From assembly GCA_964035545.1 (NCBI GenBank), contig OZ037767.1, forward strand, positions 22,398,628 to 22,462,627: a stretch of 64,000 bases of DNA, in the 5' to 3' direction. The notes below the pieces were generated by a model. That model saw only the letters and a program-made list of their open reading frames with translations, ran no database searches and was not told the DNA's origin. Each line of letters opens with the position of its first letter. Position 1 is the stretch's first letter. The translations under genes were made by a program, and so were the position numbers. Positions 6,013 through 42,010 of the stretch are shown in pieces. Origin of the DNA: Bugula neritina. Its lineage: Eukaryota; Animalia; Bryozoa.

Positions 6013-6019
6013 TATAAAA
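6013..6019 (+). promoter_or_regulatory. TATA box candidate of gene A
   Basis: TATAAAA 44 bp before ATG 6057; AT-rich background lowers specificity. Confidence 0.45.
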
Positions 6020-6056
6020 AGTCATGATATTATTTGTGTGTAGAAAAAGAATAAAA

Positions 6057-8591
6057 ATGAGGTTTTCTCGAGCTATCCTGTGTAGCTGTCTAGTATTACT
6101 CTTGATTCTTTACTGCATTGAGAGTAAAAGTGGCGGATACAGAAGAGGCAGAAAGGGGAGAAGCAGATATGGAATTTCAAGGTAAAAGCTTATATGGGGC
6201 TTAATTATTTATTTGAGTCTGATTTATTTACATAATATAATAACATAAACCGTCAAACAAATATTATTTTGCCTTCTATTACAAACAAAAATTAAAAAAT
6301 CAGCCATGGTATACTGGTTAGATTCTGATCTAGTATGACATAGGTCATAGGGTTGAGTGTTGGTCATTGGTGATATTAAGAAATTAGTAATCAATGCTAG
6401 CTATCCTTTTGGAGAAGCCATCAAACTATTTTTCCAGCATGGTAAAGGCACAAATTTCAGCTCACTTCAAAACCCTCGTCATGAGGGTTTCCCACGAAGA
6501 TGGAGACTTTAAATCAAAGTGAAATTTTCAATTACTGAAACTCTTAGTAAAAGTTTGTTAGCATACTTTAGTGTAAGAGTTACAACATTGAGCTATGATG
6601 AAAGGAATTTGATCTAAAATGATATACCAATGATAGCCTATAAAGGCATTGAAATTTTTCATTAGCAAAAACAGCTTTAAGGAACACAACTCCCCCTCCC
6701 CCAGGCCCAACCCCCATTAAATTTATAGAGTGTCAAAATTACACAACTATATATTATATACTGAGAATAATCAATATTATGAATCATTTGGTAATGAGTC
6801 ATGTTAAGATTTTAAAGAGTTTTTCAATCTTTATTATTATATATAACTCAAGTTCTGATAACTTTTAAGAATAGGGTGTGTCATGTATATAATACTATTT
6901 ACCTACATGTATACCTACATGCATATTATATTTACATGTATGCCTACATACACTATGTATAACAACACGTACCAATTTCAAAATCACCTGTATAATAGTG
7001 CACTTATTGTTCAGTGTTCTTAAACATACCAAGAGTTTTAATTACCTTCTCATTTCTTTGAGCTGTCTGTAACCAGAAAAAGTTTTTTTATAAAACGTTT
7101 ATGCAGAAATCATACTTGATGAATATTATAAGGATTTTTATAACTTGCTATTTTTAGTTATTTTGTATATTTAAATAAACTATGATCAAGTTCAAATAGA
7201 AAACAATTAGAATTATCTTAGGCCACGTATAATAATTGATAATAATTTCTCCAACATATTTACAGTAGGCCTATAACTCAAAGCTTTTTACGGGATACTA
7301 TGCTTGCACTTTTAACAATACGTGCAATATTTTTCTTGAATAAACAAAGTTGTTGTTACTACGGTCAACCATGGTTTTTTAAATGTGTGATCTGTGCACA
7401 TAATTTTAGCTGAGTATCTTTTAGTAACTATACTACTGGCACAATTGGGGTGAAATAAATATTAACAAATTGCTAAAGCAGTACTAACATGATAATATAA
7501 ACTTACATTATCACATTTTATTAATATAAAAGTAAAATTACAAGTTTAAATATTCATGTTGGGCAACATACCCTGATATTATCTTAATATTATCAAAAAC
7601 ATGAAGCAAAACTTTTTATAGTAAAATTGAGAGTTATCTTTCCACAACACACACTAGCTTTATAAAAGTCTAGTGTTGTATAGCTAAATAACTTGAGTTA
7701 ATGATTTTTTTCGCAGAATGCTATAAAATTCTTTTCATTGTACGAGATATTTTTGTGCTGAACCAAATTTACAGAAACTTTGTTTTTATGATTTGTAGAC
7801 CAAAAGCTAATGGTGGTAGATATGTTGGCAGCCGTACACCCCACCCTTCTCCATCTAACGGCAGGTATTCTGTGCCACGTAGAAACAACAGAAGGGCACG
7901 TGGTTCACAGAGGAGAAACAGAAATAGAAACATCATCAGAAGCAAAATACCAAAAGCTGAGTCAGCAGTTGAAAAAGTAAAAGTTGCTGCATTACCAGCT
8001 CAACCTAAAAGCTCCAGAAAACGTTCTGGGGGATTGTTGGGGCATTTCTTTAACCGATTCAATGTCAAGGATTTAGTAGATGCAATTGGATCACTTGAGA
8101 AATCTGGTAGTGGATCAAAAGACAAGTCTTCAGATAAGAGTAGGTCTCATGAAAAGATCTACTTTGATTATTATGACCCACACGGTTTTTATAGCCACAA
8201 CTCTTACGGATCTCACGCGTCTTATGAGTTCTCTCACCACCATTCCTACAGAGCAAGCAAATCATCTGAAAAATCATCTAAAAGTTCATCTAAGGGGTCA
8301 TCCAAGGGGTCATCCGAAGGGTCATCCAAGGGGTCATCTGAAGGGTCGTCTAAAGGGTCATCCGAGGGGTCATCTAAGGATTCGTCTTCATCTGGTCACA
8401 AGCATGTCTATTACCCTAAGAAACCTGTTCACCTGCCTTACTCTGTTATTGAGCCACATAAAACTCAGTCACTTTCACATTTGCCATTGGGTTATGGTGG
8501 ATATGATAATAGGTTTGTAACTCCTGGTTTTCCACCGAAATCATTTAATTCTAATTTTGGTTTGAGTAAAAGCATCTTTGTAAAACACTAG
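6057..8591 (+). CDS. Gene A: secreted Arg/Ser/His/Tyr-rich low-complexity protein (~305 aa), 2 exons
   Basis: Exon 1 6057-6181 MRFSRAILCSCLVLLLILYCIESKSGGYRRGRKGRSRYGIS(R) with signal peptide and donor AG|gtaaaa. Exon 2 7799-8591 after tttgtag; the phase-2 join is in frame with ORF 7701-8591. Blocks: Arg-rich, GGLLGHFFNR, His/Tyr-rich, SS[KE]G repeats. Confidence 0.85.
6301..6360 (+). mobile_element. Degenerate tRNA-derived SINE head
   Basis: cagccatggtatactggttaga...ggtcatagggttgag resembles the 5' part (A/B boxes) of the SINE copies at 17336-17497 and 57225-57392. Confidence 0.4.
8286..8381 (+). repeat. Coding 12-bp tandem repeat, 8 x SS[KE]G, in gene A
   Basis: SSKG SSKG SSEG SSKG SSEG SSKG SSEG SSKD, with synonymous variation at third positions. 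Confidence 0.9.
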
Positions 8592-11500
8592 GCTAAAGTA
8601 TAGTACTGTAGTGAAAATCCTGTCGTTGTTTAGCATACAAACACTAAGTTATCATATAATAGTTTTTATTAACAATTATGGTTAGTTAACTTTAATTAAA
8701 CAATTAATTGCAACGTTTTATTCTGTTGGAATTTTATTCATTTTAAAATACCTTTTGATTATTGCTGTTGATAATGTTTTTTATTCATTATTAAATGTTA
8801 TTGTTGTTATATGTCATTTTCATATTAATTTGCATATGCCAAAATAATACTTGTAACCCATTCTCAACTGTTACCACAACTGTTCATCAAATTGAATATA
8901 GATGCACTATAACTATTTGTAAAGGGTCAAAGAAATTGAAGGAATTTAGCTGTATGCTACTAATATACAATATAATTATATAAGAAACACTATTTACATA
9001 ATAAATACTATGTTTTAACATAAACCAGTGCTACATTATATTACATACATGATTTTACATTATAGCAGATACATAAAATAATAAACTTAAACAATAACAA
9101 AGTATGACGCATAAGAAGAAATAAAACTTATATTGTGTTGAGCTGGTTGATAAGATTAGCTTAATATAAGAGCATTAACACTAATCTAGTGTAACTTTGT
9201 CTTACTCTGTCTAGTATCTTACCAGCTACGAATACTCAATTTCAATTCTTTGCCGGCAACGCCTTAATCTTAGAGTGGCAAGCTATAGAGTTGAAGTAGT
9301 GTAGACATAGCCATTACAAAAATATAAATGATGCTGTTAACTAGACCGGGAATTAGAGCCAACACCTTAGTGGCATCATAGACTAATATTACACAGATTT
9401 TAGTTGTTTTTATATAATACAATGCAGAACTCTGAGCTTATATTTGGTCTATTGTGTGTTATAGCCACCAAGAATAGAAACAAAATCATGCATCCATGTA
9501 TAGAATAAACTTGCTATGCAATATGTTTAATAGTGAATTGTCATAAAAAAACATAAAACCATTTAATAAAGCTAACAGGAAATTATAAAACTTATCATGC
9601 TGTTTATTAAATTTTATTATAAAACTATAAACGTTCACTTGTGTGAGTATGCAAAACTAGAAAACTCAACAGCTATCAAAAATTGAAACAGCCTTTTGTT
9701 TGAGAGTTAAATATTATCATATTATCATAAGATAATTATTCAAATATGTTGTTGTATTATTGTAAAGAGAGATTTAACATTCTTGTGATTAGGATACTTA
9801 ATAAGTACCGTATCATCAAGAAAATTTTATTAAAATTGAATTTTTTGGAATTTTGAAGATATCTGCAGTCGGGCAAAAAGTTTCAACTAAAAATTGCATG
9901 TTATTATGCAGTGATTGTATTATATAGAAAGCTAATGCACATTAGTATAGTTTGTATGAAATGTAATAGAAGCATTGCTACCCAGAGTGGATATGTGTTA
10001 TGATAAGGACATCTCAGCTCAAAATCCAATCACGCTTTTAAAGTCTTGCATCCTTGGCTTTATTGAGAATAACAATATTTAAATAAGGGTTAGGTAATTT
10101 GAGCTTATGAAATGACGCAGCAATAAAATAACATCGTCAGTACATTTTCTATATAATAACTTCTTTCAGGATATTGCAAAAGCTTACTGTATTTAAGCTT
10201 TCGTATCGCCAACAAGGCAATCGTAATAAGAATTTACATTAAGTCTTTCGATTTATTAACTGGAATATATTAATTTCCAAACTATTCAGCGTTTTCAATC
10301 ACTGAACCAATAATCCTTTTATACAAGCACCTATGAATACTATAACTTTGTTTTAAATTTTCCATAGAAAGTGGATTTAGCTAAATTTGAGCTACTTAGT
10401 GTATCTAGTATCTACATCTAATTGAGCAGTTAGTACAGATTCAGAACTTTAGCTAGTACATAAAAATCTCTATTTATGACTCACAGATGTCACTTCGTAC
10501 TAAAACTAAAATATATTAGCAATCTTAAGCCTCAGAATCTGTAAAGGTTGTTTTTCTAACCAGCATGTCTGGAACTTAATTTAGCACCTAAATTGGCATT
10601 TTTAATCTTCAGCAACGACATTCAAACCGACATAAAATAAATTTCCCTAAGGATTTCCTTAAGACTTGGCTAATGGGGTTGGAAGCACTGGCTTGCCTAG
10701 TCATATTGAATGGTAAGCTAAACTGGTATATATTTACTGGTCATAGCTGCTTCCTTCTACTCACCATTTAATTGATTAGTTAATAAATAAGCTCAACAGC
10801 TGCTGTCAAAAGCTTGCTTTGATGAAACCTTGTTTAGTGCAGCTTATTGTTAATAAATTATCTTGACTGATTGCTAAACCTTTTCATCAACTTCTTACTT
10901 TCTGTTTAACAAATTTCATTATCTTCATAAATATTACCTGAACTATGCATGATGCAACACATATTCTTTCACCTTTGGTTGATACAGCTGGAGAAGTTTA
11001 AACTCGGCATAGAATGCCCGTGCACTGTATAAACTTGAAGAAAACTCAGCATTTTATACTTTATTTTAATAATAGCTCAGCATAATGTTACATATAAAGC
11101 TAGACTCCATATTCAAAGTATAACAAAGTTTTGGAACTGCAATAACTTTTGTAACGCCAGCATAGCTCTTTTGCAACACATCCCGTTGTTGGGTAATGAG
11201 TCCATAAACTACCTATAATTAATTTGTTAACCTTATTGTCATCAATTGTTTACCTTATTCGTTATCCGTAGAATCAGTGTCTTGTTATGAACTGTGCTAT
11301 GTCAGCAAACACAGCATGCAAACTAATCAACTTAGCTGCAAATACTTGTTGCCCCACGTTTTATTTTGTTCTAGACTCGGCATAACCATGGTTGGTCAAG
11401 TGCTAGAGCCATGACTGGTGCAGCTACTGTGTAGAGCCAATCAGGTAATACAATAGCTAAGGGGTAATTCTTAATAACATCTTTTGCATATGGATATGAA

Positions 11501-12391
11501 ATTCTGATGATTTTAAAATAACTTTGACATGTTATACATTTTTACATGCGTACTTTTACCAGAATATTGTTTCACTCAATTGGTTTGGTAGAACTTGGAA
11601 TTAATCAGAAACCCGCCACCAGCGTCAGACTACAGTGGTGAAAGGTGGCAAAAGGTGACCATTACTGCATTCATTATAGTTGTCACGGTGCTATTTATGG
11701 CATCAGTTGAAACCTATACCGCTCTAAGTACCAACAAGCTACAACTTTATTAACCTGTTAGCTTCATTCTTCTGTCCATTAGCCAAACCCATAAAACCCA
11801 TAACTTTTATCTCATACAAATTTACGTCTATGCCATCTTCATTATACAAGATAATCCCACATGAGCTCACCATATCAATGCTATAGTATAATCTATGTAA
11901 CTGTTGGGATGCTAAGCAATAGGGTAATAGCTTGATGTTTAGCACCTGGTAATCCAACTTTGCTCATTTTTAAGTACAGCTATGATGGCTAAGTAACAAC
12001 CACAAAATGAATAGTATAATATCTCAATTCTCAGTATTATATATCTTATTTTAATCAAGAGTTGAGTGGTTTTAGGCATCTTATGTTTTCAATTTACCAA
12101 ATGTTTTAAATACTCAACTACACTTATAAAGAGAAGTAAGTGAATCTATTTTTTAGAATTTAGATATAATAATTGTGATTATCATAGCAAAAATTTATAT
12201 GCAATCATACTTAGAAATAAAATAACAAATATATATTATTTTATTGTCTTTTGCAGAATTTATTCACAATTTAATTGAGATTTTTATTAAAAGCAACTTG
12301 CAGCACAAATTTTTCATAGCAAAAACTGAAATATATGCAAAGCTCTGAGAATAATGGATAATATACATATACATACATGTGAGCTCGTGTG

Positions 12392-12746
<355 letters not shown>

Positions 12747-13294
12747 ATATGTAAATGTATATATTGCATTAAAGTTATTATTGTTACAAATATTTTTTCA
12801 AGTTTATAGTGTTTTTGTTCATACTGTAAGTGTAATCTAACTATAAGTGGTAAAATATATGCACATCCAGGTACTTTTGTCTTTATAATAAATAAGATGC
12901 TGCCACTATTTAAATATGTCTGATCTAAGACTTGAGCTGCTGAAAAAACTTATATAGACGCGTTGATTCATAGTGGTAATAAAAAGAGGTAATTTTAAGC
13001 TGAAGTATCACATGAGAACATATTTTATAAAGATTACCTTAAATTGTGAGATTATTAGAGCATTATAAAAGTTATATTATTTATTAATCCTTTTTCTAGG
13101 AGATTAGCTAGTCAATATGGAGTAATAACAGGCTCCTCAATGCACACTAACACCCTGCTGATCTCTACAGATATAATACGACTTCAAAAACTGTCAGAAA
13201 TTGATCTCTAAGCACAATAATTTTTTATTTGTGTGAACTTGGTTTTCTTTTACATCATAAAAGGCTTACACTAATCTCAACACTAATCTGCAGA

Positions 13295-13301
13295 TATAAA
13301 A
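13295..13301 (+). promoter_or_regulatory. TATA box candidate of gene B
   Basis: TATAAAA 60 bp upstream of ATG 13355. Confidence 0.5.
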
Positions 13302-13354
13302 CCTTAGGATAGGTGAGTCAGGTTCTTACTGGATCCAGAACAGCCGTTGCAAAC

Positions 13355-15125
13355 ATGTTGCTCTTCAAAGCTCAGCTGATAATGGCATGCTGTTTAGTCA
13401 GCGTAACTTCCAAATACCTTTCTAGAACTAAAAGAAGTTTTGACAGCAATTTGGGCGATGAGTTCTTTAAAGTAGGATTCGCGAATGGTGATGACATGTT
13501 TATAGATGCATTTGGTGAAAGTAATTTTCCAAGGTAACTGGGTACATTCTCTATCTATCTATACATGCTAAACAGAACAAGTGGTTGTAACTTTTAAATG
13601 CAAGACTTTTAGATTACGATCAACAGTTATAGAATATAATAATTTTATTAACATACCATTTGTCAAAGAACTGATTGATATTATAATTGACATATGAATT
13701 TGTATTTGAAGCTTGTCTTATAAAATAATTAGAAAAGGTTTGCTGAAATCTAATTGTAAACAAAAGATGCAAAATGATTGATTGGAATATGTCTTTAGCG
13801 TGTCACTAACCCTTTTTGCAGGTTGCTAAATGATCAATATAATTTGTGCTTTAAAAATCAGTTACAGTTCTGGGTTTGGATTTGCTAACAATGTGAAGGC
13901 TACTACACCTGTCGCAGCAACAATGGCAGAGGTGACTGACTACGCCACCACGAGACGTCCTCAACGACCTGCTGCCGATTATGGTTCAGAAGGTGGTGCC
14001 AGGCAGCGAGCTACAAACCCTCCTGTTACAGTCTACGCAGATCCTACGGCATACCCAGAAATCAGAACAGAATATCAAAGAACAACAGTTGCTGCTCCCG
14101 GTGAAAACCAGTATCCCTCAGAAGGTGGTGCCAGGCAGCGAGCTACAAACCCTCCTGTTACAGTCTACGCAGATCCTACGGCATATCCAGAAATTAGAAC
14201 AGAGTATCAAAGAACAACAGTTGCTGTTCCCGGTGAAAACCAGTATGCACGTGTTACCTCAGCTATGACATGGGGTGACAATTACAAAGCTCCAGCTAAC
14301 CACCAAGGAAACACTCACAGACCAGTAGCTGGACCATCATACAAGCAGCCATCTGCAAGACCAGCAACTAACTACGACAACAACCGTTATGTACAACCAC
14401 ATCAATCTAGAGGTACTCGACCGCCAGGTGTCAAACCCAACTTTCGACCACCACATGTGCAGCCACGATTTAGGCCAGCAGGAGTTGAACCAAACTACCG
14501 ACCAACTTCTGCAAGACCAGCCCCATACAATCCAGCCCCATATAACCCAGCCCCATCTAGACCAGCCCCATATAACCCAGCCCCATCTAGACCAGCTCCA
14601 TCTAGACCAGCCCCATATAACCCAGCCCCATCTAGACCAGCCCCATATAACCCAGCCCCATCTAGACCAGCCCCATACAATCCAGCCCCATCTAGACCAG
14701 CCCCATCTAGACCAGCCCCATATAACCCAGCCCCATCTAGACCAGCCCCATACAATCCAGGTTCAGCAAGACCAGCCCCATACAACCCAGCTCCATCTAA
14801 ACCAGACCCATACAACCCAGCTCCATCTAGACCAGCCCCATACAACCCAGCTCCATCTAGACCAGCCCCATACAACCCAGCCCCATCTAGACCAGCTCCT
14901 GTTCAACCAAGACCAGCTCCTGTTCAACCAAAACCTGCTCCTGTACCCGTACCACGTGTACCAGCTCCTGTACCAGTGCCACGTGTACCTGCTCCTGCAC
15001 CTGTACCACGTGTACCAGCTCCTGTACCTGCTCCTTCTCCAGATTCAGATTTTACGTCATCAACTTCTTCCTCCACCACATGGCCAACTAGTAGTAGCAG
15101 TTCCACAACAACAGAAAGTAGCTAG
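13355..15125 (+). CDS. Gene B: secreted Pro/Ala/Tyr/Arg-rich repetitive protein (~478 aa), 2 exons
   Basis: Exon 1 13355-13533 MLLFKAQLIMACCLVSVTSKYLSRTKRSFDSNLGDEFF... (signal peptide, furin-type RTKR, donor AG|gtaact). Exon 2 starts at 13868 (ttacag; alternative in-frame acceptor gives 13862) and runs to TAG 15123-15125; phase 2, in frame with ORF 13830-15125. AATAAA at 15299. Confidence 0.88.
13986..14246 (+). repeat. Coding tandem duplication, 2 x 132 bp (44 aa), in gene B
   Basis: SEGGARQRATNPPVTVYADPTAYPEIRTEYQRTTVA[AV]PGENQY twice; differences mostly synonymous. Confidence 0.95.
14517..14891 (+). repeat. Coding 15-bp repeat array, 25 pentapeptides (PAPYN / PAPSR and variants), in gene B
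   Basis: ccagccccata[ct]aa[ct] and ccagc[ct]ccatctaga units, counted from the translation. Confidence 0.95.
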
Positions 15126-16616
15126 ACAATATTCAACTCGAGTACTTGAAGTGAAGCAGATGCTCTTACATTTATTATCAAATTGCTTGGGTGCTGACTA
15201 CTTCTTATCAATATATATATTCACTGAATGATATTAATTTATCACCATCATTTTTTATTTAATTATTTTTCTCAAGGCAAATTTGTTGTGTAAATGGCAA
15301 TAAAGATTAGAATGGCTGAAAAACAAAGAGCCTTCCCTAAAAGTATATTTTATAAAACAATAAAAAGCATCTACAGAGCTTTAGTTGATTATTGTGCCTG
15401 TATTTTCATGTAGTGAATTACTATTATTCTGACTCAGCCATTAAACTTTATAATTCAGTTTTAGATTATATTATGATGTATGCTAAACTCTCAGAGATCA
15501 ATCGAGTTGAAGTGCCATGTGTTAAGAGGTGACTTAAATCTAAGCCATGCAATAAATTATTCTTAACATCTTAAGTTAATGCCGATTAATTCATTTTTAT
15601 TACTGCTAATAGGCTTTTCTCTAAGTTAGCTCTTTCATTAATTGATAGATGCTACTTTGAACGCACAAGTACCAGGAATGACACTAATAAGCAATACAAG
15701 TTTCAACTACAATAGTTACAATATTTTTATTCTGGTAACAAATAGTGAAATCAAAAAATATCATATAGTACATAATATAATTGCATATATAAAACTACAG
15801 CGTTTCGATTTGTTGCACATATGAGTAAATTTTTAGCCATCTAAATAAGATTAATGGCTAATTTGGGCAATATGTCCACCTATGGTAATGATCTTTGCTC
15901 TTGGAATTCTCTGTAACTGAAAGCATATACATTGCATAACAAATTGAATTACAAGTTTAGGTGCCACAATAATACAATATGTTAACCCAACTGTTGTAAT
16001 TACCAGTGCGTCAAGGGTTATATTCTCTGTGTAACTTTTGTTAAAAATACTAAATTACAATAAATATATACAATTACTACTAACATGATAATTTAAAAAA
16101 GAAAATTACATATACATATGGTTTTTATTATGAAAGTCTTTGAAAATTTTTTTAGCAAACTCTAATTTTTGTTTATAGTTTGAAATGGGATTTTTTTATT
16201 AGCACTTTGATGTTAAACCACTAAGACTGATTAATTGAAATAAAACCATTTTTAATCCGAAATAATTTTAACACTTTGTTTAAATCTTTAATTAATTTTG
16301 CAAAAGTGGGCACATTTTATTTCTATGACCCATTCACACTGCATACATGACAAAAAATATTCATGCTCAAGCTTTCCACCAGATCTAGCCAATCAGCAGA
16401 TAGCTTACATCCTAATGACCAAGAATGTTGTAGAGTGCATTATAACTTCAACATAATTGCAAGAAAGAAGTAAATATTTACCTCAGTTATATAGCACAAT
16501 ATCTGCTAATTGGTGTAGGCAACTCATCAAATAATAAAAATTCCGAATAATACAGTATATGATTTAAATATTAGTATTATGAAACTCAATAAACTAATCA
16601 ATTATTCAGAAATCTA

Positions 16617-16698
16617 TAGAAGCAGCACCGAGTTGGAGATGACTGAGTATACTATTTGTATACAGATTGTTGTCAAAACCCCAAACCCCTGCACTCCG
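16617..16698 (+). mobile_element. Partial copy of the ~138-bp TA-ended MITE family
   Basis: tagaagcagcaccgagttggagatgactgagtatactatttgta... aligns with the left end of 24999-25136. Confidence 0.65.
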
Positions 16699-17335
16699 TG
16701 ACCATCAATTCTATGTGGTTTCAAGCGATTTTCGTAATCGTAGTTTCTGTAACATTAGAGCCTCAGTTACCAAAAATAATTTTTGGTAATTTTATGAGGG
16801 CTATCATATGTCCCACCCTACAAAAAATTAGTACTATAAATGTAGTTAGATCCACATATTATATGTAGAAAGCACAATTCCAAATAACAAATGTAGGTAA
16901 TTCCATAGTGCATGTTATTTAAATGTATGTAGAGGCAGACATACTGTATTATGGTTTAATATCATTATATTATATTACGTTATAAGGAAATATGATGAAT
17001 CATAATATAGTCTGCTAAGCAGATGTTAATTAGGTTTATGTTCAAATTATCACTTTTACTGCAAGGTGATATGAGTCAGTAAGCTAATACTCTGGCAACC
17101 AATTGCATACTATATCAGACTATAAACTTGAAAGGGGTGACGAAATAGTAATACAATTCCAGTTACACACTATGTCTTGTCTATAGATATATAATTCATT
17201 ATAGGTATGGCTAGCAAGGGATAGACTCAAGTTCCTACAGCTAGAAATAGTAAAATGAAAAATTAACATTGTTGCAATATATCAGACTGTGAACTTGAAA
17301 AAAACTCATGCAAGTTTATAGTCATCATTCCTGTG

Positions 17336-17497
17336 AGAAAGTGTTTTTAAGCTAGTTAAGGATATATTTATGTGTGGTACAGAAGCAATTATGATTCGAT
17401 GTTTTTCATAACATAACCAAGGGCCTTTATCAGGCTCGAACTCGTGACTGTGTTTACTAAGCCAAACACTCTAGCCCCTATGCCCCATGGCTGCTCC
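17336..17497 (-). mobile_element. tRNA-derived SINE
   Basis: Minus strand GGAGCAGCCATGGGGCATAGGGGCTAGAG (A box-like) ... GAGTTCGAGCC (B box); body homologous to 57225-57392 (shared cagaagcaattatga). Confidence 0.75.
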
Positions 17498-18968
17498 AGT
17501 AAGGCAATTCCACCTATACACTATGGCTTTTTTGTTGTTATGTAACTATTTACAGTATATAGTAAGCTAAGAATGAACTCAAGCCCCTACAGCTGGAAGT
17601 AGTAAAATGAAGAACCAATCACACATTACTATAGCTTAGAGTTGATTAATTGAAACACATTATTTTTATACATAGATAAAATATAAAATATAATATATAT
17701 ATTATATATATATATTTTATGCATTGATATATTATATATATATTTTACCAACTAACTCATCGATAGTAAGTTTAAAATGCTTGATGTCCTAAAATAAACT
17801 AAATCAAAATATATAAAAGCTCAAAAAAGAATAGCGCTTATAATCTATTTAATAAAGCAAAATAAGAAAAAAATTCTATAAACTAAGAATTACCCAGAAC
17901 AGCTTCTCACATATAATCAAATGATATAAAAGCAGGTTTCATTATAGCATGAAGAAAATTATGGAAACATTTCATCCATCATTACAAGAATCTTATTCTC
18001 ACTTCACAGCGGCAAGGTATGAGCAGTCTGCCTGTGCTGAGACATGCTCGCATATTAGTTTACGCAACAGACTTAGCTTATAACATAAGAATAGAAAATA
18101 CACCCCAGCAAGGTGTATTATAACATGGGCTGCCCACTATTCACAAGCATGATTACAATATACACAGCCAAAATCTACTACATAGTCTAAAAGTTTACAT
18201 TTGTGTGTTTTGTCCCATAATTTCTTTCTAAATATTAGTATGATATATTTTAACTTTAACTGAATAAAAACATATAACCAAGGATGAATGGTGTATATAA
18301 TTTAGATGCATATAATTCTTATTAATTTTCATTAAGAGGTTTTTGTCAACTATGCGTCATTGGTATTTTTAATATCAAATCAACAATAAGTTTTTGATTC
18401 AAAGAATAAAAAGATCAAAAAATGTCGCCTTTTTTAAGACTATAGCTTGACTAAAGATCATTCGTTATTAATGTCTGTGAGCATAAAACATTAGGTTGTA
18501 AGTTAGCATCAACCTAATTATCACTTATTTGTAATAACAAGACTTTCAAGCAGCACCAGATACTGTGCAGACTCTATTGAAACATATACCATATAATATT
18601 AACAAATCATACCAATCTGTGTTACCATACATAATACTATAACAGCATGACAATTTTTGTTACCACATAATATACAATACCATGACACACTGGGTTACCA
18701 CATACTACTATAACACCATGACAGTCTGTGTTACTACATAATACTACAGCACCAAGACAAACTGCGTTACTTATCATGGTATTGCTATGCGTGAAACTTT
18801 GTTACTATGCATAATCATAATACAATATTATACTTTAGAGTAAAACTTATACAGTATCATAATAGATGTTGCTCTATGGTTTACATGGAAGAAGACAGTG
18901 TTTGAAATACAAGTAATGCATGCCATACATTCAGTAGCTCTTTATAATTTATTGATGGTTGTTTTGCA

Positions 18969-19410
18969 GCGTGTGTGCAGCGTGTGTGCTGTGTGCGTGC
19001 TGTGTGCGTGCAGCGTGCGTGCTGTGTGCGTGCTGTGTGCGTGCTGTGTGCGTGCTGTGTGCGTGCTGTGTGCGTGCTGTGTGCGTGCTGTGTGCGTGGT
19101 GCTGTGTGCGTGCTGTGTGCGTGCTGTGTGCGTGGTGCTGTGTGCGTGCTGTGTGCGTGCTGTGTGCGTGCTGTGTGCGTGCTGTGTGCGTGTTGTATGC
19201 GTGCTGTGTGCGTGCTGTGTGCGTGCTGTGTGCGTGCTGTGTGCGTGCTGTGTGCGTGCTGTGTGCGTGCTGTGTGCGTGCTGTGTGCGTGCTGTGTGCG
19301 TGCTGTGTGCGTGCTGTGTGCGTGCTGTGTGCGTGCTGTGTGCGTGCTGTGTCCGTGCTGTGTGCGTGCTGTGTGCGTGCTGTGTGCGTGCTGTGTGCGT
19401 GCTGTGTGTG
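18969..19410. repeat. 11-bp minisatellite (GCTGTGTGCGT)n, ~40 copies
   Basis: Directly visible; source of the Cys/Val/Ala-rich ORFs in three frames. Confidence 0.95.
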
Positions 19411-22400
19411 TGTCGTATGGGATTTGTGTGTTATTTTATCATAATGCTGGTTTTAAATAGAAAGCAATAATTCTTCAGATATATAACTTTAATTATTAGG
19501 GTTAAGGAAACTTGTCTGTTGATTAAATACGGTATTTACATATTTTTTGTCAATTATAATAATTATTGAAATAGGAAATTGGCTGAACTAGCAGACTGAC
19601 ACGTGCCTCACGTCAGTAAAAAGTTATTGCTATGGCAACTAATGTTTGGTGCTTGTCTTACCAACTATCAAAGCATACACAAGAGCTGCTAACCTATCCC
19701 AGACTAAATGATTTATGAAAGAGATTAGTTTGGCAATCACCTCCTTTTATTAAAAATAACTGTCATAAATTATAAAATAATCCTTTGAGATTAGTCTAGT
19801 GACAGGAAATAACTTAATAGGCTTAGGGTAATCATCGGTAAAAAGCAAAGAAGTTACCATACTGCATTTATAAACTGATTTATGAACTGAATCATAGTTT
19901 ATGTTCTGCTAGATTAAAAAAGAAAGTTTTTGTCAAGTATAGCCATTTGCAAAGGCCCTTGTGATATCCTTTTATAATTAAAACGAGCAGTGTATAATGA
20001 GCTGAAAACACATGCAGTACATTCAATGTAACTAGTAAAACACCAGTTGTAAGTTTTTAGCAGAAAAGGTGCATTTGATGTTTCAGGTGATATGCATAAA
20101 TCTGGAGTTTATAAAAAATGCTTTGTCAAAAGTGTTTAAAATTATTCTGTTATCTTTGATTTTATTAAGCATTTGGTTTCTGCCTCATTATGTGACAAAT
20201 AGATGTGTTTTAACTAGTTTATGAGACATATATAAGACTATAAGAAATAACATAGACAAAGAAATATGCTGATTACAAATATAATGCAACTAACAATCTT
20301 TCATTCATATAAGATATTACAACTACAATTTGATAACATAAAAATATAAATTGCTATCAACTTGCATTACAGTAGCAATGAAGTAACAATTAATTGATAT
20401 CATAATAACAGCAGCAGACAAATTTTTAGATTTTAAACACGTATTTTAAGAAACATTTGTTTTTATAAACATGAGTAAACATAATGTTGGGTCACTAATT
20501 TTAATTCACTGTAGCTACTACTAAGCAAACAGGGTGTTGTGTGTATTACAATGTAAAGTTCACATACAAATTAACTAAAAATAAATACAGTTAAGCTGAC
20601 TAGTTTAAATTCTGCTCAATAATACGCTGCAGCCAACTAGTTGCTTTGAGACTAGTAACAATACAATAGTTGTCCATTCAATTGTCTATATTCATCAAAA
20701 AACAAAATTACACTTTTATGAACCATAATATTATAATTATAGTGAAGGTGTTCGAATGCCAGGTAGCCAGTAGCTTAAGCACACACACATACACCAACTA
20801 TTGGAAGTCTTCCAAAGCGAATATTAACAAAATATGTGATCTGCTACTATTTAGGAATTTAAGGTCATTCCAGTTTGACTTAAAGAGTTCTGTGCTATTA
20901 CCTGATTGAAGATATTCATGGTTGATTAATAATGTCAAATATAGGGGTGTTAGTGCACTTGAGGCTAATGTGATTTGAAGATTACTATGCAGTAGCTCTT
21001 TTCATCTTTAAAAATATATTCTAAAGCTGAAATGAAGTATGCTTTAATAGAAAGAGCAGAATGCCATTAGTAGCGTTAAGCTTCTGGTCACATGTTTTGA
21101 CAGAACAAACCTGAGATATGATGTTAAGGAATAAATTCAGTTAAAATTTCTGTTTTCTAAAAATTTTAAATTTATCTAATCAGCTCTATAAAAGTATAAA
21201 AAGAATAAAAATGTTGCTGTAATGTGAGAGGGTGCTTTAGTGAGCTGAGGTATCACTCGCAGCAAAAACGTATAATTATTCAAAAAATTGCATAATTCTG
21301 TGAGAAAACTAAAATTCTAATAAAAGCATTTTTAATTGATTTTTCCATTGATATAAAATCATTGTGATATTACTTGCTGCCATTAAAAAATTTTCCCCAG
21401 CCTAATTAAATCATTTTGTGAAATTGCAATATATAAAGCTTTATTCAGTGGCCATTTAAAATTGGTAATGGTTTTCGCTCTTGAATTCCATACAGATGAG
21501 AACTTCATAATTTGTAGATATATAAACTCATATTTTGAGTTTTAAACTTTTTAACACACTTTAAATGATGTTTTTATGACCAAATACCTTATCGGTTATA
21601 TTGAGTTTATCTGCTGTTAATGACTTATAAAATAACCTTATAAGGCAAAAAAACGTTATACATAACTGCATTTGCCTGTCAAACTATTTTAAAAAGTCAA
21701 CAAGTTGTCAACATATTTTACTTAGAAATAAAATTCATGAAAATCTAGATATTCAACTGACTTTGTTGCAAACAAGTTTTTGGTATACGTAGTTCAACAT
21801 TTGTGCTAGTACTAAAGTGGAATGCAAGCAGGCAATTAAACTTTGCTAATGTGATAGATATATGATCAGAAGTTGCAGCATTATAATAGCATATATATTT
21901 AGATATTGAAAATCTCAAGTATAGTTTCTCTATTTACATTTCAATTTCTTTTGTCAGCACACTTTCATTTTTTCAAAATTATGTCAGTAAACAATGATTT
22001 GATGTAATTTTTACTAAAAACTAGAACTTTACCTTTCAAGAGTAAACACTATACTAAGAACTTTTAAAGAAATACTTTGAGGCAAAGAATTTGGTAACGT
22101 GAGTTTCTTTATCAAGTTACGGTATATGGCTTCACCATCACACTTGTGTAAATTGGTTACTGAAAAAGTAGGTGTGTTTAAAAATTTTCATTTCAACTAA
22201 CAGCAAGAACTCAAACAGGAAGCAACTATGTGAAATGAGCTGTAAAATAAATATCAAATTGATTAACCACTTTAGAAAGATTTATTTAAGGTAATCCTAT
22301 TGGATTACCAGCACTCGCATAACTCAGTTAATTAGAAATTGGAGTACGTCTGAAAGTAGTTTGAGTTTTACAGTAGGCTTTAACAGTTAGCTAGGGAACA

Positions 22401-22674: not shown

Positions 22675-25600
22675 ATGAAAGGAAAGTGTCTTCTTGCGCT
22701 GCTTTGCCTCACAGTCTTTCTAATAGCTAGTGTTCTCAGCTATGGTAACTATGGTAGTGGCAGCAGTAGAGGTTATGCTGCCAGCCAATACAAACCTCGG
22801 TATGGTGGTAACCGGCCTCGGTATGGTGGTAACCAGCCTCGAAGAGGTTATGGAGGAAGAAGAGCAAGAGCAGGAAGGAAAGGTTATAGAGCTCATGGTC
22901 GCGGCGGCGGAAGAAGAGGCAGAAAGAGAGCACAACGCGCCCCCACTCATACACATCCACCTCCCGTGAGACCAGCACCAGCTACTAGACCACCTGTAGC
23001 TCCGAGTCCTCCTGTTCATCATCCAGCACCTCATGGAGGACACAGAACTCAAGGATACTACCCAGGAGGTGGCAGTTTAGTCGGCGGTTTATTAGGCGGA
23101 CTGAATCTAGGAAACTTCTTCAACCGTGGTGTGCTCAACGCTTTGATATTGTCCAAACTGGGTGGATTAGGAGGACTTGGTAAAGGGGTAGATGTGATTG
23201 AGTAAGTAAAACTATATTGATATTTTACACATACCTGCATGCCAATGTGGTTCTTTTCAGGTACTATTAATTTTTTAAGCATTGCACTGGTTTTGTTTAT
23301 TATTATTTCACATTGAACATGACGTAATATTAATAATCTACTTGTACTGTATTTAAAATATTTGAAAACTTGACTTTAGCTGTAAGCCATAACAAGCATA
23401 GTTAACCATTCTACACTTTGATAAAACTATTTCACACTCTTACACAGCAGTTCTCAAGTCATTTTTTATATACATATAAATCTTCAATATTTAAAATTAA
23501 AGAGATGTTTCATATAAATATTCAATTTCATTGCCACAACACTGGTTTATGCGCTCTTTATTTAGGCATAAAAATTAAAGATTACATAAAGATTACATTT
23601 TTCTTTAAGTCAATATGTTAGTATAAATCCTTCAGAATTTAAAAGCGTTGCTAAAGCCTTACTATTCTGTTTTGTAAAAGTATAATACATTGAAAAGTAT
23701 TTTTGTCAATAATTTTAATATAATTGTCACTTGTTTTAATTACATTCTTGTTGCTTATTATGAGCTAAAGTACTAAGTGAAGTACATGCTATCTAGTCAT
23801 TTAACAACTTGCACTTAATCAACAAAGCTGCTTATCAAACTTTACATAAAGTAATTTTAATTACATAAAAATAAAGTTATACTCTCAGCTATAATACAGA
23901 TAGCAAATTTTTATTTTTTCTATAAATATTCCCAGCTCAAACTTCAGTCAAAAAAATATATTTTACGATTGCTAAAATGGTTCGTCTCATTTTGAAAGGT
24001 ACCAGTACTATCGTTCTTTTTAATAATGTGTGGCAGCTCATCATTTTTAGCCTCCAAGACTTCTTTTCCTGATAAGATGCTTTGTTCTGCATGAAATAAC
24101 TTTTATTTGAGTATCAAACTTACAAATCTTTTTGCATTTAAAGGATTGCTCTATCTTGTCTAATAAATGGCCATTTAGGTCAAACACACATAATATTGTG
24201 TTTTTCTAAGCATGCATTGACAAAAAGCATTTGACCAAAGGTAGAAAAAGTTAGTTGAAGTTGAGGGTGTAGATTGATAACAGCCAAAACGCCGAATTTG
24301 AAATGAGCTGGGAACTGTGACGTAACAGCGCCAGCATTCCTGCTGGTCACGTGATTATACAAATGAATAACTATAAAAATATGACTGTGAGATGTGATCT
24401 TTCAGCTCGTAATTTGTATATTCATAGAAGTGCAAATGTGAATTATCTCAATCTATAGTTTTTTGACATGTTAAATAACATGTATGTGATAACATTAGGC
24501 GATATTTTGCTTGTAAGCATAGAAAAAAGCATTGCAAAAACATGCATTCTTTAGGATGAATGCCTGCGATAGGTCTAAACTAGGTCAGATTGTGCAATAT
24601 TACGGGCGCACCAAAGCTGACCTATATAGCGCACTGTAACTGCTTGAGCGTTATTGGTTGATGTTGCGCTCAGCAACCTTGAATACTAGCGTTATAGTTA
24701 GCACGCGCAGCATAGTTACTGGCGTTCACACGTCACGTATTAGGCTATTCTTTTTCATGGCTGAAAATTTTACCTCCCTCAAAATTGGAATTTTGAAAAG
24801 CTGTTTTCTAGGCATCTATCCCTTTGCAAAGTCACAATTGTTTGCATACACATTAGATTATAGTTCATAATTATAATGTAATTGTAATAAACTAAGATAG
24901 AGCAATCCTTTAAGTCCAGGTATTTAATTCAGCCATTTCTGGAATGAAACAGTTATGCTCTAGTGGTCAGAGTGCAGGCCTAGTAAAGCAAATATTTCTA
25001 GAAGCAGCACCAAGTTGAGGGTGATTGAGTACAGTATTTGTACATGTGTTTTTGTCAGAATTCCAGACCACCAACTCTAAACTCAAGACCTCATTGCCCA
25101 CAGTATTCACTGACTACCAATTAGGTGCTGCTTCTATTGATTTTCTAGCAGACACTATTCATGAGCTCGAGTTCATATTTTAAGTGGTTTCAAGAAGAGC
25201 ATTTAAACATAATAGATCCCTCTTTAAAAGTCTTGAAATCATGTTGCCAGCATAGTGAGAGGCACAGCTTATAGCTTGCTCAAAACTCAGTGAAATCGAG
25301 AATTTTCACTAGAAACAGATTTTAAACTAACGTCAGTTTATGGTGACCAATTACAATAAACATGTCTTATTTTATTTGTAGAAGTCATTGATTTGAAATA
25401 ATAATATAACAGCAGCCTTTTTTTTATTAAGAGTAAAACTTGTAAATAATATTCAGGAAAAAAAATTGGATTATTCAGGCTTTCACAGTTTAAAGTAATA
25501 AACAGAACAGCTGCTAAACTGTTGCAAATAAATTGAGGGCACTAGGAGATTCATGTACTTCTAGAAGGATTAGGGTATCCAGGAGTCAATGCAATGTTTG

Positions 25601-27281
25601 AGTCGGTAAATTCTTGGCCACAAGCATAAAATTAAACAGCTTAGGATGATTAATTTCTTCCTTAAAAAACTATTTTAAATATATAATCCCACCTGCATAG
25701 GTATAAACAAAAATGTGTTTTATAATCCTATTTTAACCAATCAAACCCATCCAAAAACTGAAATGTTATTTTATTAAGCAATTAACTGCGTACCATTAAT
25801 ATGTTATTTGGTTGCTCCATTTCTACGTCTGACTAAGAATAACCAAAATGCTGTCAAAAGATATGCTTTCTGCTGTATTCAACTCCATACAATTTTTAAA
25901 CTGGTCTTTGCTTTTTGTCTATAGTTTTAAATACGGTAATGGTCTGGTGGTGTGGCTCGAAAAAGTTTTAGTTTTCATCACCAAAGTTTAAACTGTAACT
26001 GTTGTACTGGTAGTAGAGTATAGTACTGTGACACTGGCAGTATAGTACTGTGACACTGATAGTATAGTACTGTGACACTAGTAGTATAGTATTGTGACAC
26101 TAGTAGTATAGTTCTGTGACACTAGTATTATAGTACTGTGACACTAATAGTATAGTACTGTGACACTAGTAGTATAGTACTGTGACACTAGTAGTATAGT
26201 ACTGTGACACTATAGTAGTATAGTACTGTGACACTAGTAGTATAGTACTGTGACACTAGTAGTATATGTACTGTGACACTAGTAGTATAGTACTGTGACA
26301 CTATAGTAGTATATGTACTGTGACACTGGTAGTATAGCACTGTGACACTAGTAGTATAGTTCTGTGACACTAGTAGTATAGTACTGTGACACTATAGTAG
26401 TATAGTACTGTGACACTATAGTAGTATAGTACTGTGACACTGGTAGTATAGTACTGTGACACTGGTAGTATAGTACTGTGACACTAGTAGTATAGTACTG
26501 TGACACTAGTAGTATAGTACTGTGACACTAGTAGTATAGTACTGTGACACTAGTAGTATAGTACCGTGACACTATAATAGTATAGTACTTATAGCTTATT
26601 ACTGGCACATTTAGCACACTTATAGCTTGGTTTTTGACATAGCCAGCATACATTTGCTGTATTTCAATCTATTTTAAGCCATTGCAGTTCTCATATATCT
26701 TAGTTTTAAAGCTGCAGGACTGTCCATTTAGTTCTGGGCTTACTATATATACTAGCGTTGGTATTGGTAGTAAAATTCCAAGATTTAGAGGCCAACTCTT
26801 TAACTGCATTCCCATTGCTTTGAATTGATCTGTACAGTTGTTTGTGCAGATAGATTTCTGGTTGCAGTCTGCATTAACTTATGGTTATGGCTTCATTCGA
26901 TGCAACTGTTTTTAAACATCAAATAAACAAATGCATTAGATAATGCGAAGCAATAGAAATGCCCTCTATCTCTATCTATGTTATAGTATAACAGTGTGTA
27001 GCTGAGTTCTCTATGTTCATAGAGAAGTTGTTGATGTCACCTCAGACATAGGACTAGGAGGAGGACTAGACGTTGGTGGTGTCACAGCTACAATTGATCC
27101 TCTGCTAGATGGTCTCGGTGTAAGTGTCACTGCTGTAACAGATGTTGGTCTAGATGGAGGTTTGGGAGGAGGTCTAGACTCCGTCACAGCAGTTGATGTA
27201 ACTGGCGTTGCTGGAACTGAGACTACTACTATTTCTTCTTCTTCTTCTTCCACGTCATCAACCATTTCTCCAGTTTTGTAG
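22675..27281 (+). CDS. Gene C: secreted Gly/Arg/Tyr-rich protein with acidic Gly/Val/Asp C-terminal block (~261 aa), 2 exons
   Basis: Exon 1 22675-23201 MKGKCLLALLCLTVFLIASVLS|YGNYGSG...GVDVI(E), donor GA|gtaagt. Exon 2 27023-27281 after ttcatag reads EVVDVTSDIGLGGGLDVGGVTATIDPLLDGLGVSVTAVTDVGLDGGLGGGLDSVTAVDVTGVAGTETTTISSSSSSTSSTISPVL*; phase 2 and compositionally continuous. AATAAA at 27463. Confidence 0.85.
24138..24913 (+). mobile_element. Non-autonomous DNA transposon (Kolobok/T2-MITE-like), copy 1, in gene C intron
   Basis: TTAA at both ends, TIR AGGATTGCTCTATCTT...AAGATAGAGCAATCCT; near-identical inverted copy at 61360-62136. TTAA TSD with AGG..CCT termini matches Kolobok/T2-type rather than piggyBac (CC..GG). 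Confidence 0.9.
24999..25136 (+). mobile_element. 138-bp MITE with TA ends
   Basis: Perfect inverted ends TAGAAGCAGCACC / GGTGCTGCTTCTA; related copies at 16617 and 38490. Confidence 0.8.
26012..26588. repeat. 22-bp minisatellite (AGTATAGTACTGTGACACTAGT)n, ~26 copies
   Basis: Directly visible, with 24-bp variants; lies in the gene C intron. Confidence 0.95.
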
Positions 27282-28420
27282 ACCATGCTTCAAACAGATG
27301 TGCTAAGTATGTACCTTCGTTTTGTATAATGTTACTTTTCCAATTGAATAATGCTGTATATTTCACAAGTACTGTTGAGTTTTACTTCCACCCATTTATT
27401 GAATACTATTTTTGTTTGTTGTAATGCACAAGGATACCAGTGTGGCATTGTTCAGTTTTTGAAATAAAAGGTATCATTAGGGGGAATACATATATTTCAC
27501 AGGTATAATGGCGAGATAACGTTTGTACTTTGTAGGCATGGTGTACATGGCTAGTAGTTTGGATTTTGGAAACACACTAACATAAACTTAGTGTAAAATA
27601 TTGTGCATGTCTATGATGGTTGTATATTACAGCTTTCAAACAGCAATCATTTTTAAAACATTTCTACTATATTTACATTTTAATCAAGGAATTTCATTTT
27701 TTCAATTGTTACTAAATTAAGCATCTTGCTACAAAGACTGCATATAAAACGTTTCACTTTGGTATAGCCTACTATATTGCAATTTTTATAATTTAGAAAA
27801 ACTCAGTGAAATGATTTTTATTTTAAGTATTATATATGAAATGCTTTTGTGAATTTATGAGAAACTTCCTATAAAACATATTATTAGTAATTATTTCAGC
27901 CCTAAGATTGTCAAGGGATAAGTATTATTTGGAGAAGTTAAATGTTTTGCTGCCGAGTATAAACAGTTAATTTAAAAATGAGAGCATAGAATGTAATATT
28001 ATAGCCCAAGTCTTATTATAACGCTCATAATACTAAGACTTGTACAATTCCGAGTTCTCAGAATTAGAAGTTAACTTTTGTATACAGATCTATGAAATGC
28101 TAATTTTCAAAGTATTTAACTTACATTGGTTGCCATGGTAACCATTGTAGGAGCCTAACTGTATAATTTTGTTGTTTTCAGTTGTTACAAAGAACGGAGA
28201 TACCAACTACCAAGGAGTCTGTTATGCATCCAAAAGTTGAAGTTTAAACAGTTTTTGTTATTAATTTAGTTACTTTGTAGCATGTTGTGTGTTAGTTATT
28301 AAAGGTTTTTATGGTAGTTGTATAAAATATGTTAGTGTGTAGCTGCTTAATGGATTATATTTGTATAATAAATATCGATTTAAAGTTGGGATTACTGGGG
28401 ACTTTCATAGCATCTTTCAG

Positions 28421-31637: not shown

Positions 31638-31802
<165 letters not shown>

Positions 31803-34800: not shown

Positions 34801-35196
34801 ATAATGTTAGAAATGTAAGAAATCGAAGAAAAGCAAGTAACTGTTATATATAAATGGTAATTAGTTTACTAAATCAATGCTCAGTCTAAATATAATCACG
34901 GCATTTGCTTTTATCATCAAGAGCTGTTTTCTTTTCAGATATAACTTGTTGGAATCTATTGGCAAAGAGTTGTACAGCTGTGATGCAAAGCTATCAGGTA
35001 ACTCACACAAAAAGACATTACATAACATTGTAACCTTTGCACTAAACAATCATTGTGTAATTAGTGCAAAATTGCTAAATTTCTGTTAGCTTATTATTTA
35101 AAGGTAATTGATGTCTATTTGGCCTATCTCCCATTATTGTAACCAGGTTTAAACAATTATAAATAGAACTAGATGTAGCATTGAGTTAAGCCAGCA

Positions 35197-35508
35197 GCTC
35201 CTGTGGTGCAATATCTGCAATTGGTAAGTGCGTGCTTGCTTGCAAGCCGGAGATCTGTGGTTTGAATCCCAGTGAGAGCAAAATTATTTTGTGAGCTATT
35301 TCAGCCTTAAGTGAAGTGTAGTAGAACTTCGAGAGGGTAAAGTGTCCAGGGGAGCCTGAATACTGAAGGAGTAGTAGATAGGCCAATGGAGTTCAGAAAA
35401 CTGGGTGAGATGTAGTGTTGTGTTCACCCAGTGGTCCCCGTGGTGTAATGGTTAGCATACTTGCTTGCAAGCTGAAGGTCTCGGATTCGAATTTCAGTGA
35501 GGGCAAAA
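35197..35508 (+). mobile_element. Two tandem tRNA-like SINE heads / pseudo-tRNAs (~35197-35283 and ~35434-35508)
   Basis: Both have gtggtg[ct]aa..tggt[at]ag (A box), cttgcttgcaagc, a B box-like g[gt]tt[tc]gaat and cagtgag[ag]gcaaaa; stems are imperfect. Confidence 0.6.
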
Positions 35509-36528
35509 CTATTTTACAGTAGACTTCACAAAAATATGCCTCGTTTGCTTTAGGATGACAAGCAAAATATGTTGCTGATTTGAATATGCTAGACAATGAT
35601 TAGATATAAAAAAAAGGTAGTTTTTTAAGAATAATGCCACATCTAAAAGAAGTTGAATGTTAATAATATATTATTAAAGCTAGAGCTGCATATTATCATA
35701 TGCTATGTATTAAGTATGTATTGGGCTAAACTCTACAGCCTACTATATCACATATTGTTATTATGGTACACCTTGATGTGGCTCTGTCTTGTTTTAGCAG
35801 TCTGTGTAAATTATAATAATATTTTATAACTTATTTCCGTTGCTACAGGTAGTGTAGGCTATTTGTATTCTGATACATTTGATCTAAAATTATTAACCTT
35901 TCAGGAGACAGTAAAAAACATGATACGTTGGCAATAACCAAACTCAGCATCTGTAGTTGTATAGCTCACTTATTGTATTTTGATTTATTTGACGAAATCA
36001 TTTTTCTAAAAACGTAGTTGGACTATGATAATATAAAGTGTGTTAAGTGTGATACAAGTAAAGGCATGTATTAAACGTAATGCAAAAATTGGTTTTGTTG
36101 AAGCAAAAAATTTAAATGGCAGCAGCTATGAATACTAAAAGTATAAGTTACTTTGTAATTGCATGATGCAAAGTTAAAGCCTTAATAAAACATCTAGTTG
36201 AAGATAAAGCTGATCTTGATTAATGGTGCAAGTCCGATCTAATGCGTAACAGATCTTTTAGAATGCCAGTGCTGTTGCGAGAAAATAAATTATTGAAGCC
36301 AACCTTAAGCATTCATAAATCTATATTATTAATCTTTGCGTATGTATTAAGAATACCATTGGATTATCTCCTATTTGAAATATCTAAAAGGACTAAAATA
36401 ATCAAGAAAAGATTATGCTGATTACTAGATGACGAAAGCAGCTGTCACTGGAAATCATTGGGGATGGCGGAGGGTCTTTTCAAACCATTACAGAGCATTA
36501 AGGTTAGATAAGCCACTAAATCTGTTGG

Positions 36529-36535
36529 TATAAAA
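36529..36535 (+). promoter_or_regulatory. TATA box of gene D
   Basis: ggTATAAAAgggg with Inr-like tcagatt ~29 bp downstream; non-coding first exon ends 36616 (|gtaagt), acceptor tttgtag at 36760. Confidence 0.7.
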
Positions 36536-36768
36536 GGGGAAACAGATTGGCCTGAAATCAGATTTAGCTGAAACAGTGACAAGTTTGGACTCTTTGTCTA
36601 GTCATTGTCATATAAAGTAAGTAAAATTTGGTAATGACAAGTATTTTAGTGTTGTACAGTTACTTTTACTTGATTGTGTATATTTAGGCATAATTATTTA
36701 GGTTTGGTGCACATGTAAGAACTGAATGTGGAGCATCATAATGTAATCAACTGTTTGTAGATCTCAAC

Positions 36769-37503
36769 ATGAAGACCTCCGTGCTGGTACTGCCACTTCT
36801 TGTGGGAGTAACAATGTTCTCTGGCTCCGAGGGTTTCCTCGGTAGTCTTTTTAACTTAGGTGGTGGGAATGGAAAAATGAGCACTGGTGGGCTTCCAGGC
36901 GACCTACTCAATAATTTTCTTCGTGGACCTACCAACCCTCCACTTCCTCCACCTACTAGGCCACGCCCAGTACCAACTCCAGCTCCTCTACCACCAGCAC
37001 CTGTAATGCGTCCTACTAGAGGAGGGGGAGGATTCAATCGGAGAAGACCTCAACGGCCCCAGGGTAGAATGTCCAGAGGAGGAAACAAAGGACACCATGG
37101 AAGTCGCTATGGAAATGGCTACAACAACCACGGTAATCAACACTACAGACCAGTTGCAAAGAAACCATCCTACCCTACCTACCACAAACCAGGACATAAT
37201 TCTTATAATGACTGCTATAACTGCAAGTAAGTAAAAAAAGATTATTATTTTTCTTATCAAGCATATAACTAATTGACTGCCAATATTTAAAACAACATTT
37301 AAATTATTATTAAACCAATCTATGTAAATTGTAGGACTACACCAAAGGCAGTCCCTGTAACACCAGCACCAACAACGGCAGAAACAGCAGGACCAACCAC
37401 TACCAGTTCATCTTCTACCAGTACTAGCACTACTACTACATCAACCACATCTACTACTTCTACTTCCACTACTACTGGTGCTCCAATTATAATACAGGGG
37501 TAA
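36769..37503 (+). CDS. Gene D: secreted Gly/Pro/Arg/Asn/Tyr-rich protein with Thr/Ser tail (~208 aa), 2 coding exons
   Basis: Exon 36769-37226 MKTSVLVLPLLVGVTMFSGSEG|FLGSLFNLGG...YNDCYNC(K), donor AA|gtaagt. Exon 37335-37503 after ttgtag reads TTPKAVPVTPAPTTAETAGPTTTSSSSTSTSTTTTSTTSTTSTSTTTGAPIIIQG*; phase 2. AATAAA at 37828. Confidence 0.88.

Positions 37504-41950: not shown

Positions 41951-42010
<60 letters not shown>

Follow-up and report, generated by a model that had tools for sequence, protein, structure and literature searches.

The described systems closest to the locus analysed here are the mussel foot proteins, in which the basic residue is Lys, Tyr makes up roughly 10-28 mol% and the oxidases involved are tyrosinases; the cement of Phragmatopoma, whose Pc1-Pc5 proteins form a low-complexity secreted set relying on opposite charges (polyphosphoserine Pc3 versus basic Pc proteins); and the laccase-tanned cuticle of insects, in which laccase-2 is combined with His-rich cuticular proteins. 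Here, we describe four consecutive genes, named A to D, in a 64,000-nucleotide stretch of the genome of the bryozoan Bugula neritina (C3:22398628-22462627 of 216,009,554 bases; hereafter the window, with unprefixed positions counted from its first base). The genome was assembled under the Darwin Tree of Life initiative and comprises 216.00 Mb in nine chromosomes (PMC11480708). By sequence, the locus is an array of four separate Bugula-restricted genes with two coding exons each, and their predicted products are secreted, strongly basic, almost cysteine-free and intrinsically disordered. The chances appear to us about even that they have an extracellular structural or adhesive matrix role, possibly with curing by adjacent oxidases.

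In general design, A-D resemble the mussel foot proteins, being of the secreted type, basic, disordered and poor in Cys. Gene B encodes a tandem 5-/10-residue Pro/Tyr/basic repeat (PAPYN-PAPSR) whose design parallels that of the mfp-1 decapeptide repeat, and the product of C opens with a Gly/Tyr/Arg polycation recalling the cationic, Tyr/Gly-rich mfp-3 and mfp-5. However, there is no sequence homology between the two sets (none to the mfp family was detected for the queried exons among 5.8 billion plus 1.84 billion proteins), the basic residue of A-D is Arg instead of Lys, and the neighbouring oxidases in Bugula are of the laccase type and not tyrosinases. The initial annotation of the locus had drawn a comparison with marine adhesives built from secreted proteins rich in Tyr or 3,4-dihydroxyphenylalanine (DOPA), but Tyr accounts for only 5.7, 6.1, 4.2 and 3.8 mol% of mature A, B, C and D, respectively, well below its share in mussel foot proteins.

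With the Phragmatopoma proteins, A-D share the organization of a multi-protein, low-complexity secreted set with Gly/Tyr/basic and Ser-rich blocks, but no homology; moreover, whereas the worm cement depends on opposite charges, A-D are all polycations. Because all four are net cationic, the cluster does not constitute a self-contained, oppositely charged coacervate kit. As for the laccase-tanned insect cuticle, laccase-type oxidases in Bugula adjoin secreted, structural-type proteins bearing His and Tyr, and a sclerotization-like mechanism appears plausible by analogy. Nevertheless, A-D contain no chitin-binding R&R, Tweedle, CPAP or other cuticular-protein domain when compared to Pfam, and the Bugula link is one of physical adjacency only. 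Finally, the signal peptide of C, followed by a Gly/Tyr/Arg-rich region, is reminiscent of plant-type glycine-rich proteins (PF07172, GRP), but exon 1 of C attains 17.2 bits (E = 0.008), the cut-off being 30 bits, and the resemblance is compositional only.

Gene structure and conservation

Frame and GT-AG checks upheld the start and stop coordinates initially given for four plus-strand genes within 6057-37503. Each gene has a single GT-AG coding intron, in all cases of phase 2, with the split codons AG/A, AG/T, GA/A and AA/G in A, B, C and D, respectively, and a TATA-like sequence lies 45-90 bases upstream of each ATG. A, B and D have retained their splice sites in a sibling lineage, the acceptor of D being seen in sibling contig L015. 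For gene C, a 940-nt Logan contig (L001, from SRR4020085) carries an unbroken open reading frame (ORF) of the orthologue from start codon to stop and represents the full-length spliced mRNA of the sibling lineage, joining 23201 to ~27023 and 27306 to 28182; a TATATA sequence precedes its 5' end by ~20 nt. Since L001 links 23201 to ~27023 with the frame uninterrupted, gene C consists of two coding exons, and the many-exon structure previously assigned to it has to be abandoned. The four-gene cluster is real and not a product of chance, because its ORFs are long for DNA of 32% GC, conserved, spliced and syntenic.

The only sequencing run found to contain the locus as such is not recorded as RNA and is a DNA run, as intron and intergenic words are present along with the exons (98% of the sampled words). 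RNA-seq of ovicell tissue depleted of rRNA and polyA has been published for this species (Miller et al., 2016; PMC5041132), and SRR4020085 could not be linked to that study.

The relatives compared here belong to a sibling lineage within the B. neritina species complex, with a synonymous divergence (dS) of about 0.13-0.29. A 20.6-kb piece (L007) of the B. neritina draft GCA_010799875.2 is collinear with window positions 296-17623 at a DNA identity of 74-89%, and contigs from runs SRR4020080-85 and from sample 3300003318 of the Joint Genome Institute (JGI) match genes C and D at ~80-93%. At the protein level, exon 1 of A is 82.5% identical to its counterpart in the sibling lineage, and exon 2 is 84% identical to EB796_020313, a 'hypothetical protein' of the 2020 draft. 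The latter entry is truncated (188 aa, starting inside exon 2) because a 13-nt insertion shifts the frame; in the orthologue of gene B in the draft (483 aa), the Pro-rich array likewise contains a frame shift.

The ratios of nonsynonymous to synonymous divergence (dN/dS) indicate purifying selection on A, B and C. In exon 2 of A, the ratio is 0.17 when the first 150 codons are taken and 0.29 over the entire exon; it is 0.10 in the non-repeat part of B and 0.51 in C exon 1. For exon 1 of D, the ratio reaches 0.80, and its dN of 0.17 exceeds the divergence of both the upstream region (K 0.08) and the intron (K 0.07). The changes in D cluster just after the signal peptide. Repeat arrays vary as well: the 44-aa (132-nt) unit of B is present in two copies here versus three in the sibling lineage (L007:16466-16844), and the PAPYN/PAPSR array differs in length.

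Protein properties and relationships

On each of A-D, a signal peptide is predicted, by our own heuristic and not by SignalP, from an n-region containing K/R, a core of hydrophobic residues (10-residue Kyte-Doolittle means of 2.8-3.3) and (-3,-1)-compatible small residues at the cleavage site. These signal peptides had been part of the initial annotation, as had the block organization of the four proteins, which is borne out residue by residue (with Arg/Gly/Tyr, Pro-rich, His/Tyr and Ser/Thr blocks), and the lack of a recognizable folded domain, with which the Pfam comparison agrees: no family reaches its cut-off for any of A-D and, apart from sub-threshold compositional matches, none appears at E<=1. 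The predicted mature proteins A, B, C and D are 282, 459, 239 and 186 aa long, with isoelectric points (pI) of 10.9, 10.3, 10.8 and 11.4 and 0, 0, 0 and 2 Cys residues, respectively; their net charges at pH 7.5 range from +13 to +37, and di- or polybasic sites are numerous. His contributes ~3-5% of A, C and D, Ser makes up 21% of A, and B, C and D end in Ser/Thr-rich C-terminal tails of 25-50 residues.

AlphaFold2, run on single sequences, predicted no confident fold: the mean predicted local distance difference test (pLDDT) value was 59 in exon 1 of C and 50 in exon 2 of A. The only helices predicted outside the signal peptides span residues 136-162 of C and residues 32-48, 79-84 and 89-102 of A exon 2. 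The C helix and the last two helices of A fall in GGLLG..FFNR regions, residues 79-102 of A exon 2 corresponding to window positions ~8034-8105 and overlapping the GGLLGHFFNR motif.

All homologue searches were performed exon by exon. Exon 1 of C, exon 2 of A and exon 1 of D served as queries for word-indexed searches, exon 2 of A also for an exhaustive HMMER search, and look-ups were made in the ESM Atlas. They retrieved only Bugula orthologues or noise (Ser-repeat noise in the two protein collections named above), consistent with the expectation that the locus is lineage-restricted and escapes homology-based methods; a scan of JGI metagenomes for gene A found nothing. In searches of the entire genome, A, C and D each recovered nothing but their own locus, and B matched more than 100 unrelated Pro-rich places. 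The best non-self match of the B repeat is an open frame of ~33 tandem K-P-S-T-Y pentapeptides on another chromosome (C1:34065590-34066105, plus strand), which resembles an mfp-1-style Tyr/Lys/Pro repeat protein.

The relationship among the four genes is a separate matter, and paralogy could not be shown, although all four share a single phase-2 coding intron. In BLASTP comparisons among A-D, only a motif common to A and C scores (E = 0.019), and in Smith-Waterman alignments evaluated against local-composition shuffles, only the C-D pair is marginal (z = 2.2, 8/300), without reaching significance after nine tests. Thus, these comparisons show no order-specific similarity beyond composition. 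A motif noted earlier in D was dismissed, as the sibling lineage does not conserve it.

Candidate function, adjacent oxidases and rival explanations

From composition and neighbourhood only, we infer that the proteins encoded by A-D would be exported into an extracellular material, which might be the cuticle of the zooid, the pad by which the larva or ancestrula attaches, or the matrix of the brood chamber. In such a material, the Arg/Gly/Tyr and His/Tyr blocks would supply cohesion and cross-linking sites, the Pro-rich arrays would serve as extended spacers, and the Ser/Thr tails would be O-glycosylated. Curing would probably be oxidative, catalysed by the laccase-like multicopper oxidases of a seven-gene array located upstream.

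This array was found by a whole-genome search at C3:22319747-22394738, directly upstream of the four genes and 4-79 kb before the window, with three oxidase genes on the plus strand and four on the minus strand. Five of the genes were read in the 60 kb preceding the window, and the Cu-oxidase domains in the array were confirmed. The array holds seven of the ~11 laccase-like oxidase genes of the host and is the largest such block in the genome, the others being located at C3:17.8 Mb (one gene, at 17.82) and C5:7.13-7.18 Mb (three genes); a twelfth match is an intronless copy on an unplaced contig. The oxidase gene nearest to A lies ~9.5 kb away in head-to-head orientation. The oxidase copy nearest to the window has HRH (WLAHRHQ) where the HCH motif of the type-1 copper site is expected, and an 821-aa endonuclease/reverse-transcriptase-like frame of the long interspersed nuclear element (LINE) type resides on the minus strand between two of the oxidase genes, ~22.8-25.2 kb upstream of the window.

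The notion of an oxidatively cured material gains circumstantial support from the fact that seven laccase-like oxidase genes adjoin the cluster. A stronger version, which we consider rather doubtful, is that the seven oxidase and four disordered-protein genes form one linked enzyme-plus-substrate locus of ~115 kb devoted to oxidative curing, as in cuticle tanning or larval glue. If so, it would represent a laccase-based parallel, evolved independently, to the mussel tyrosinase-plus-foot-protein system and would give molecular access to bryozoan cuticle or adhesive for the first time. Our literature searches yielded no account of bryozoan cuticle or adhesive proteins in molecular terms, and B. 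neritina is a major fouling organism; A-D and the laccase-type oxidases next to them provide concrete candidates for work on either material. The locus also illustrates how orphan genes for disordered proteins escape or break automated annotation, as exemplified by the truncated draft entry for the A orthologue.

Several observations weigh against a matrix role with oxidative curing. The analogy with coacervates is weakened by the lack of a polyanionic partner inside the cluster, where phosphorylated Ser blocks could be the only possible source of anions. The Tyr and His contents are modest, and transcript evidence is limited to gene C. In the draft, the insertion in the A orthologue (L007:10012-10825), which lies inside the 12-nt SSKGSS repeat and is either real or an assembly error, disrupts the frame, and gene D evolves at a near-neutral or faster rate. 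Furthermore, among the neighbours listed for the oxidase loci at C5:7.13-7.18 Mb and C3:17.82 Mb, there are no similar low-complexity genes, and the link between enzymes and substrates therefore rests on one adjacency. Last, upstream and promoter words shared among A-D were sought and none was found above control.

Some of these points are what would be expected if A-D were functionally unrelated orphans whose origin or divergence was local, within an interval poor in genes and rich in repeats. Their likeness would then be generic to young, secreted disordered proteins, and the oxidases would be there by coincidence. We regard this explanation as somewhat unlikely. The oxidase loci lacking such neighbours among those listed, the upstream words that A-D do not have in common, the restriction of their similarity to local composition and the spread of dN/dS from 0.10 to 0.80 are all in its favour. 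By contrast, it leaves unexplained why four consecutive, co-oriented genes should all encode a signal peptide and a protein with a pI above 10 and almost no Cys, all carry one phase-2 intron and, in three cases, end in a Ser/Thr tail, and the purifying selection on A, B and C argues against it as well.

Distinctly unlikely, in our view, is that A-D encode precursors of host-defence (antimicrobial) peptides, from which cationic Gly/Arg/Tyr- or Pro/Arg-rich peptides and a Gly/Leu-rich amphipathic helix would be freed by proteolysis. The strong positive charge and the many di- and polybasic sites would fit such precursors, as would the KYLSRTKR sequence with its R-x-K-R site directly after the predicted signal peptide of B, which the sibling lineage shares without change, unlike the 30 residues that follow. 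The Gly/Leu-rich predicted helix of C has GxxxG spacing and lies within a stretch for which the sibling lineage shows 100% conservation, and the rapid evolution of D is of the kind often seen in immune effectors. In addition, gene C pairs a cationic exon 1, with polycation, Pro/His and Gly/Leu blocks, with an acidic block in exon 2, which could act as a neutralizing pro-piece. However, these are long proteins (208-478 aa), the C helix has a low hydrophobic moment (0.30), and no known antimicrobial family was matched in Pfam or in the ESM Atlas look-ups. Ser/Thr tails of mucin-like character and extended tandem arrays of Pro/Tyr type, as present here, are unusual in antimicrobial precursors.

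Highly improbable is a role in the organic matrix of the zooid skeleton, which is lightly calcified. For such a role, the disordered, repetitive and secreted character typical of biomineral matrices could be adduced, together with the acidic Asp/Gly block in exon 2 of C and the 21% Ser of A (the Asp-rich exon and, if phosphorylated, the Ser-rich array would bind calcium carbonate), but calcification in B. neritina is only weak, every protein carries a strongly positive net charge, and A-D match no known matrix-protein family or domain in Pfam.

Features of the locus and its surroundings

The exons of the four genes, their repeats and the other features of the window are listed in Table 1. The space between A and D contains no coding-looking, non-repetitive frame of at least 55 aa, in agreement with the initial statement that no other convincing gene lies there, small multi-exon genes being possible, and the cluster indeed ends tail-to-tail with CHAF1B, as first reported.

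Table 1. Exons, repeats and neighbouring features of the four-gene array (window positions)
Feature	Position	Strand	Description
Gene A exon 1	6057..6181	+	Signal peptide, Arg/Gly/Tyr block begins; donor AG/GTAAAA, phase 2
Gene A exon 2	7799..8591	+	Arg-rich block, predicted helices, His/Tyr block, (SSKGSS)n, Tyr/Pro tail, stop
Motif in gene A	8028-8057	+	GGLLGHFFNR
Array in gene A	8274-8379	+	(SSKGSS)n
Microsatellite	12387-12744		(GT)179, between A and B
Gene B exon 1	13355..13533	+	Signal peptide, then conserved KYLSRTKR (furin-type R-x-K-R), then fast-evolving acidic stretch
Gene B exon 2	13868..15125	+	Two 44-aa units, PAPYN/PAPSR, PAPVQ and VPVPR arrays, Ser/Thr tail
Units in gene B	13986-14246	+	Two copies of the 132-nt unit
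Array in gene B	14514-14896	+	PAPYN/PAPSR
Satellite	18971-19412		11-nt unit, 40 copies, between B and C
Gene C exon 1	22675..23201	+	Signal peptide, Arg/Gly/Tyr polycation, His/Pro block, Gly/Leu-rich predicted helix
Helix in gene C	23080-23160	+	Gly/Leu-rich, predicted
Tandem array	26017-26589		22-nt unit, 25 copies, inside gene C intron
Gene C exon 2	27023..27281	+	Acidic Asp/Gly/Val/Thr block, Ser/Thr tail, stop
Gene C 3' untranslated region intron	27307-28181	+	mRNA runs to 27306; further exon from 28182
Gene D exon 1	36769..37226	+	Signal peptide, Gly/Leu stretch, Pro-rich block, Arg/Gly/His/Tyr block with CYNC end
Gene D exon 2	37335..37503	+	Thr/Ser/Pro mucin-like tail, stop
CHAF1B exons	39035-46168	-	PF24105 at 5e-28
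PWI-domain gene	51185-56681	+	PWI-domain exon (PF01480, 9e-13), then Arg/Ser- and Pro-rich exons
Repeat in PWI-domain gene	56311-56506	+	33-nt unit

Simple repeats punctuate the array, with a long GT microsatellite between A and B, an 11-nt satellite between B and C, and a 22-nt tandem array inside the intron of C. Downstream of CHAF1B, an exon encoding a PWI domain is followed by Arg/Ser- and Pro-rich exons, one stretch of which is built of a 33-nt repeat; this gene encodes an SRRM1-like splicing factor.

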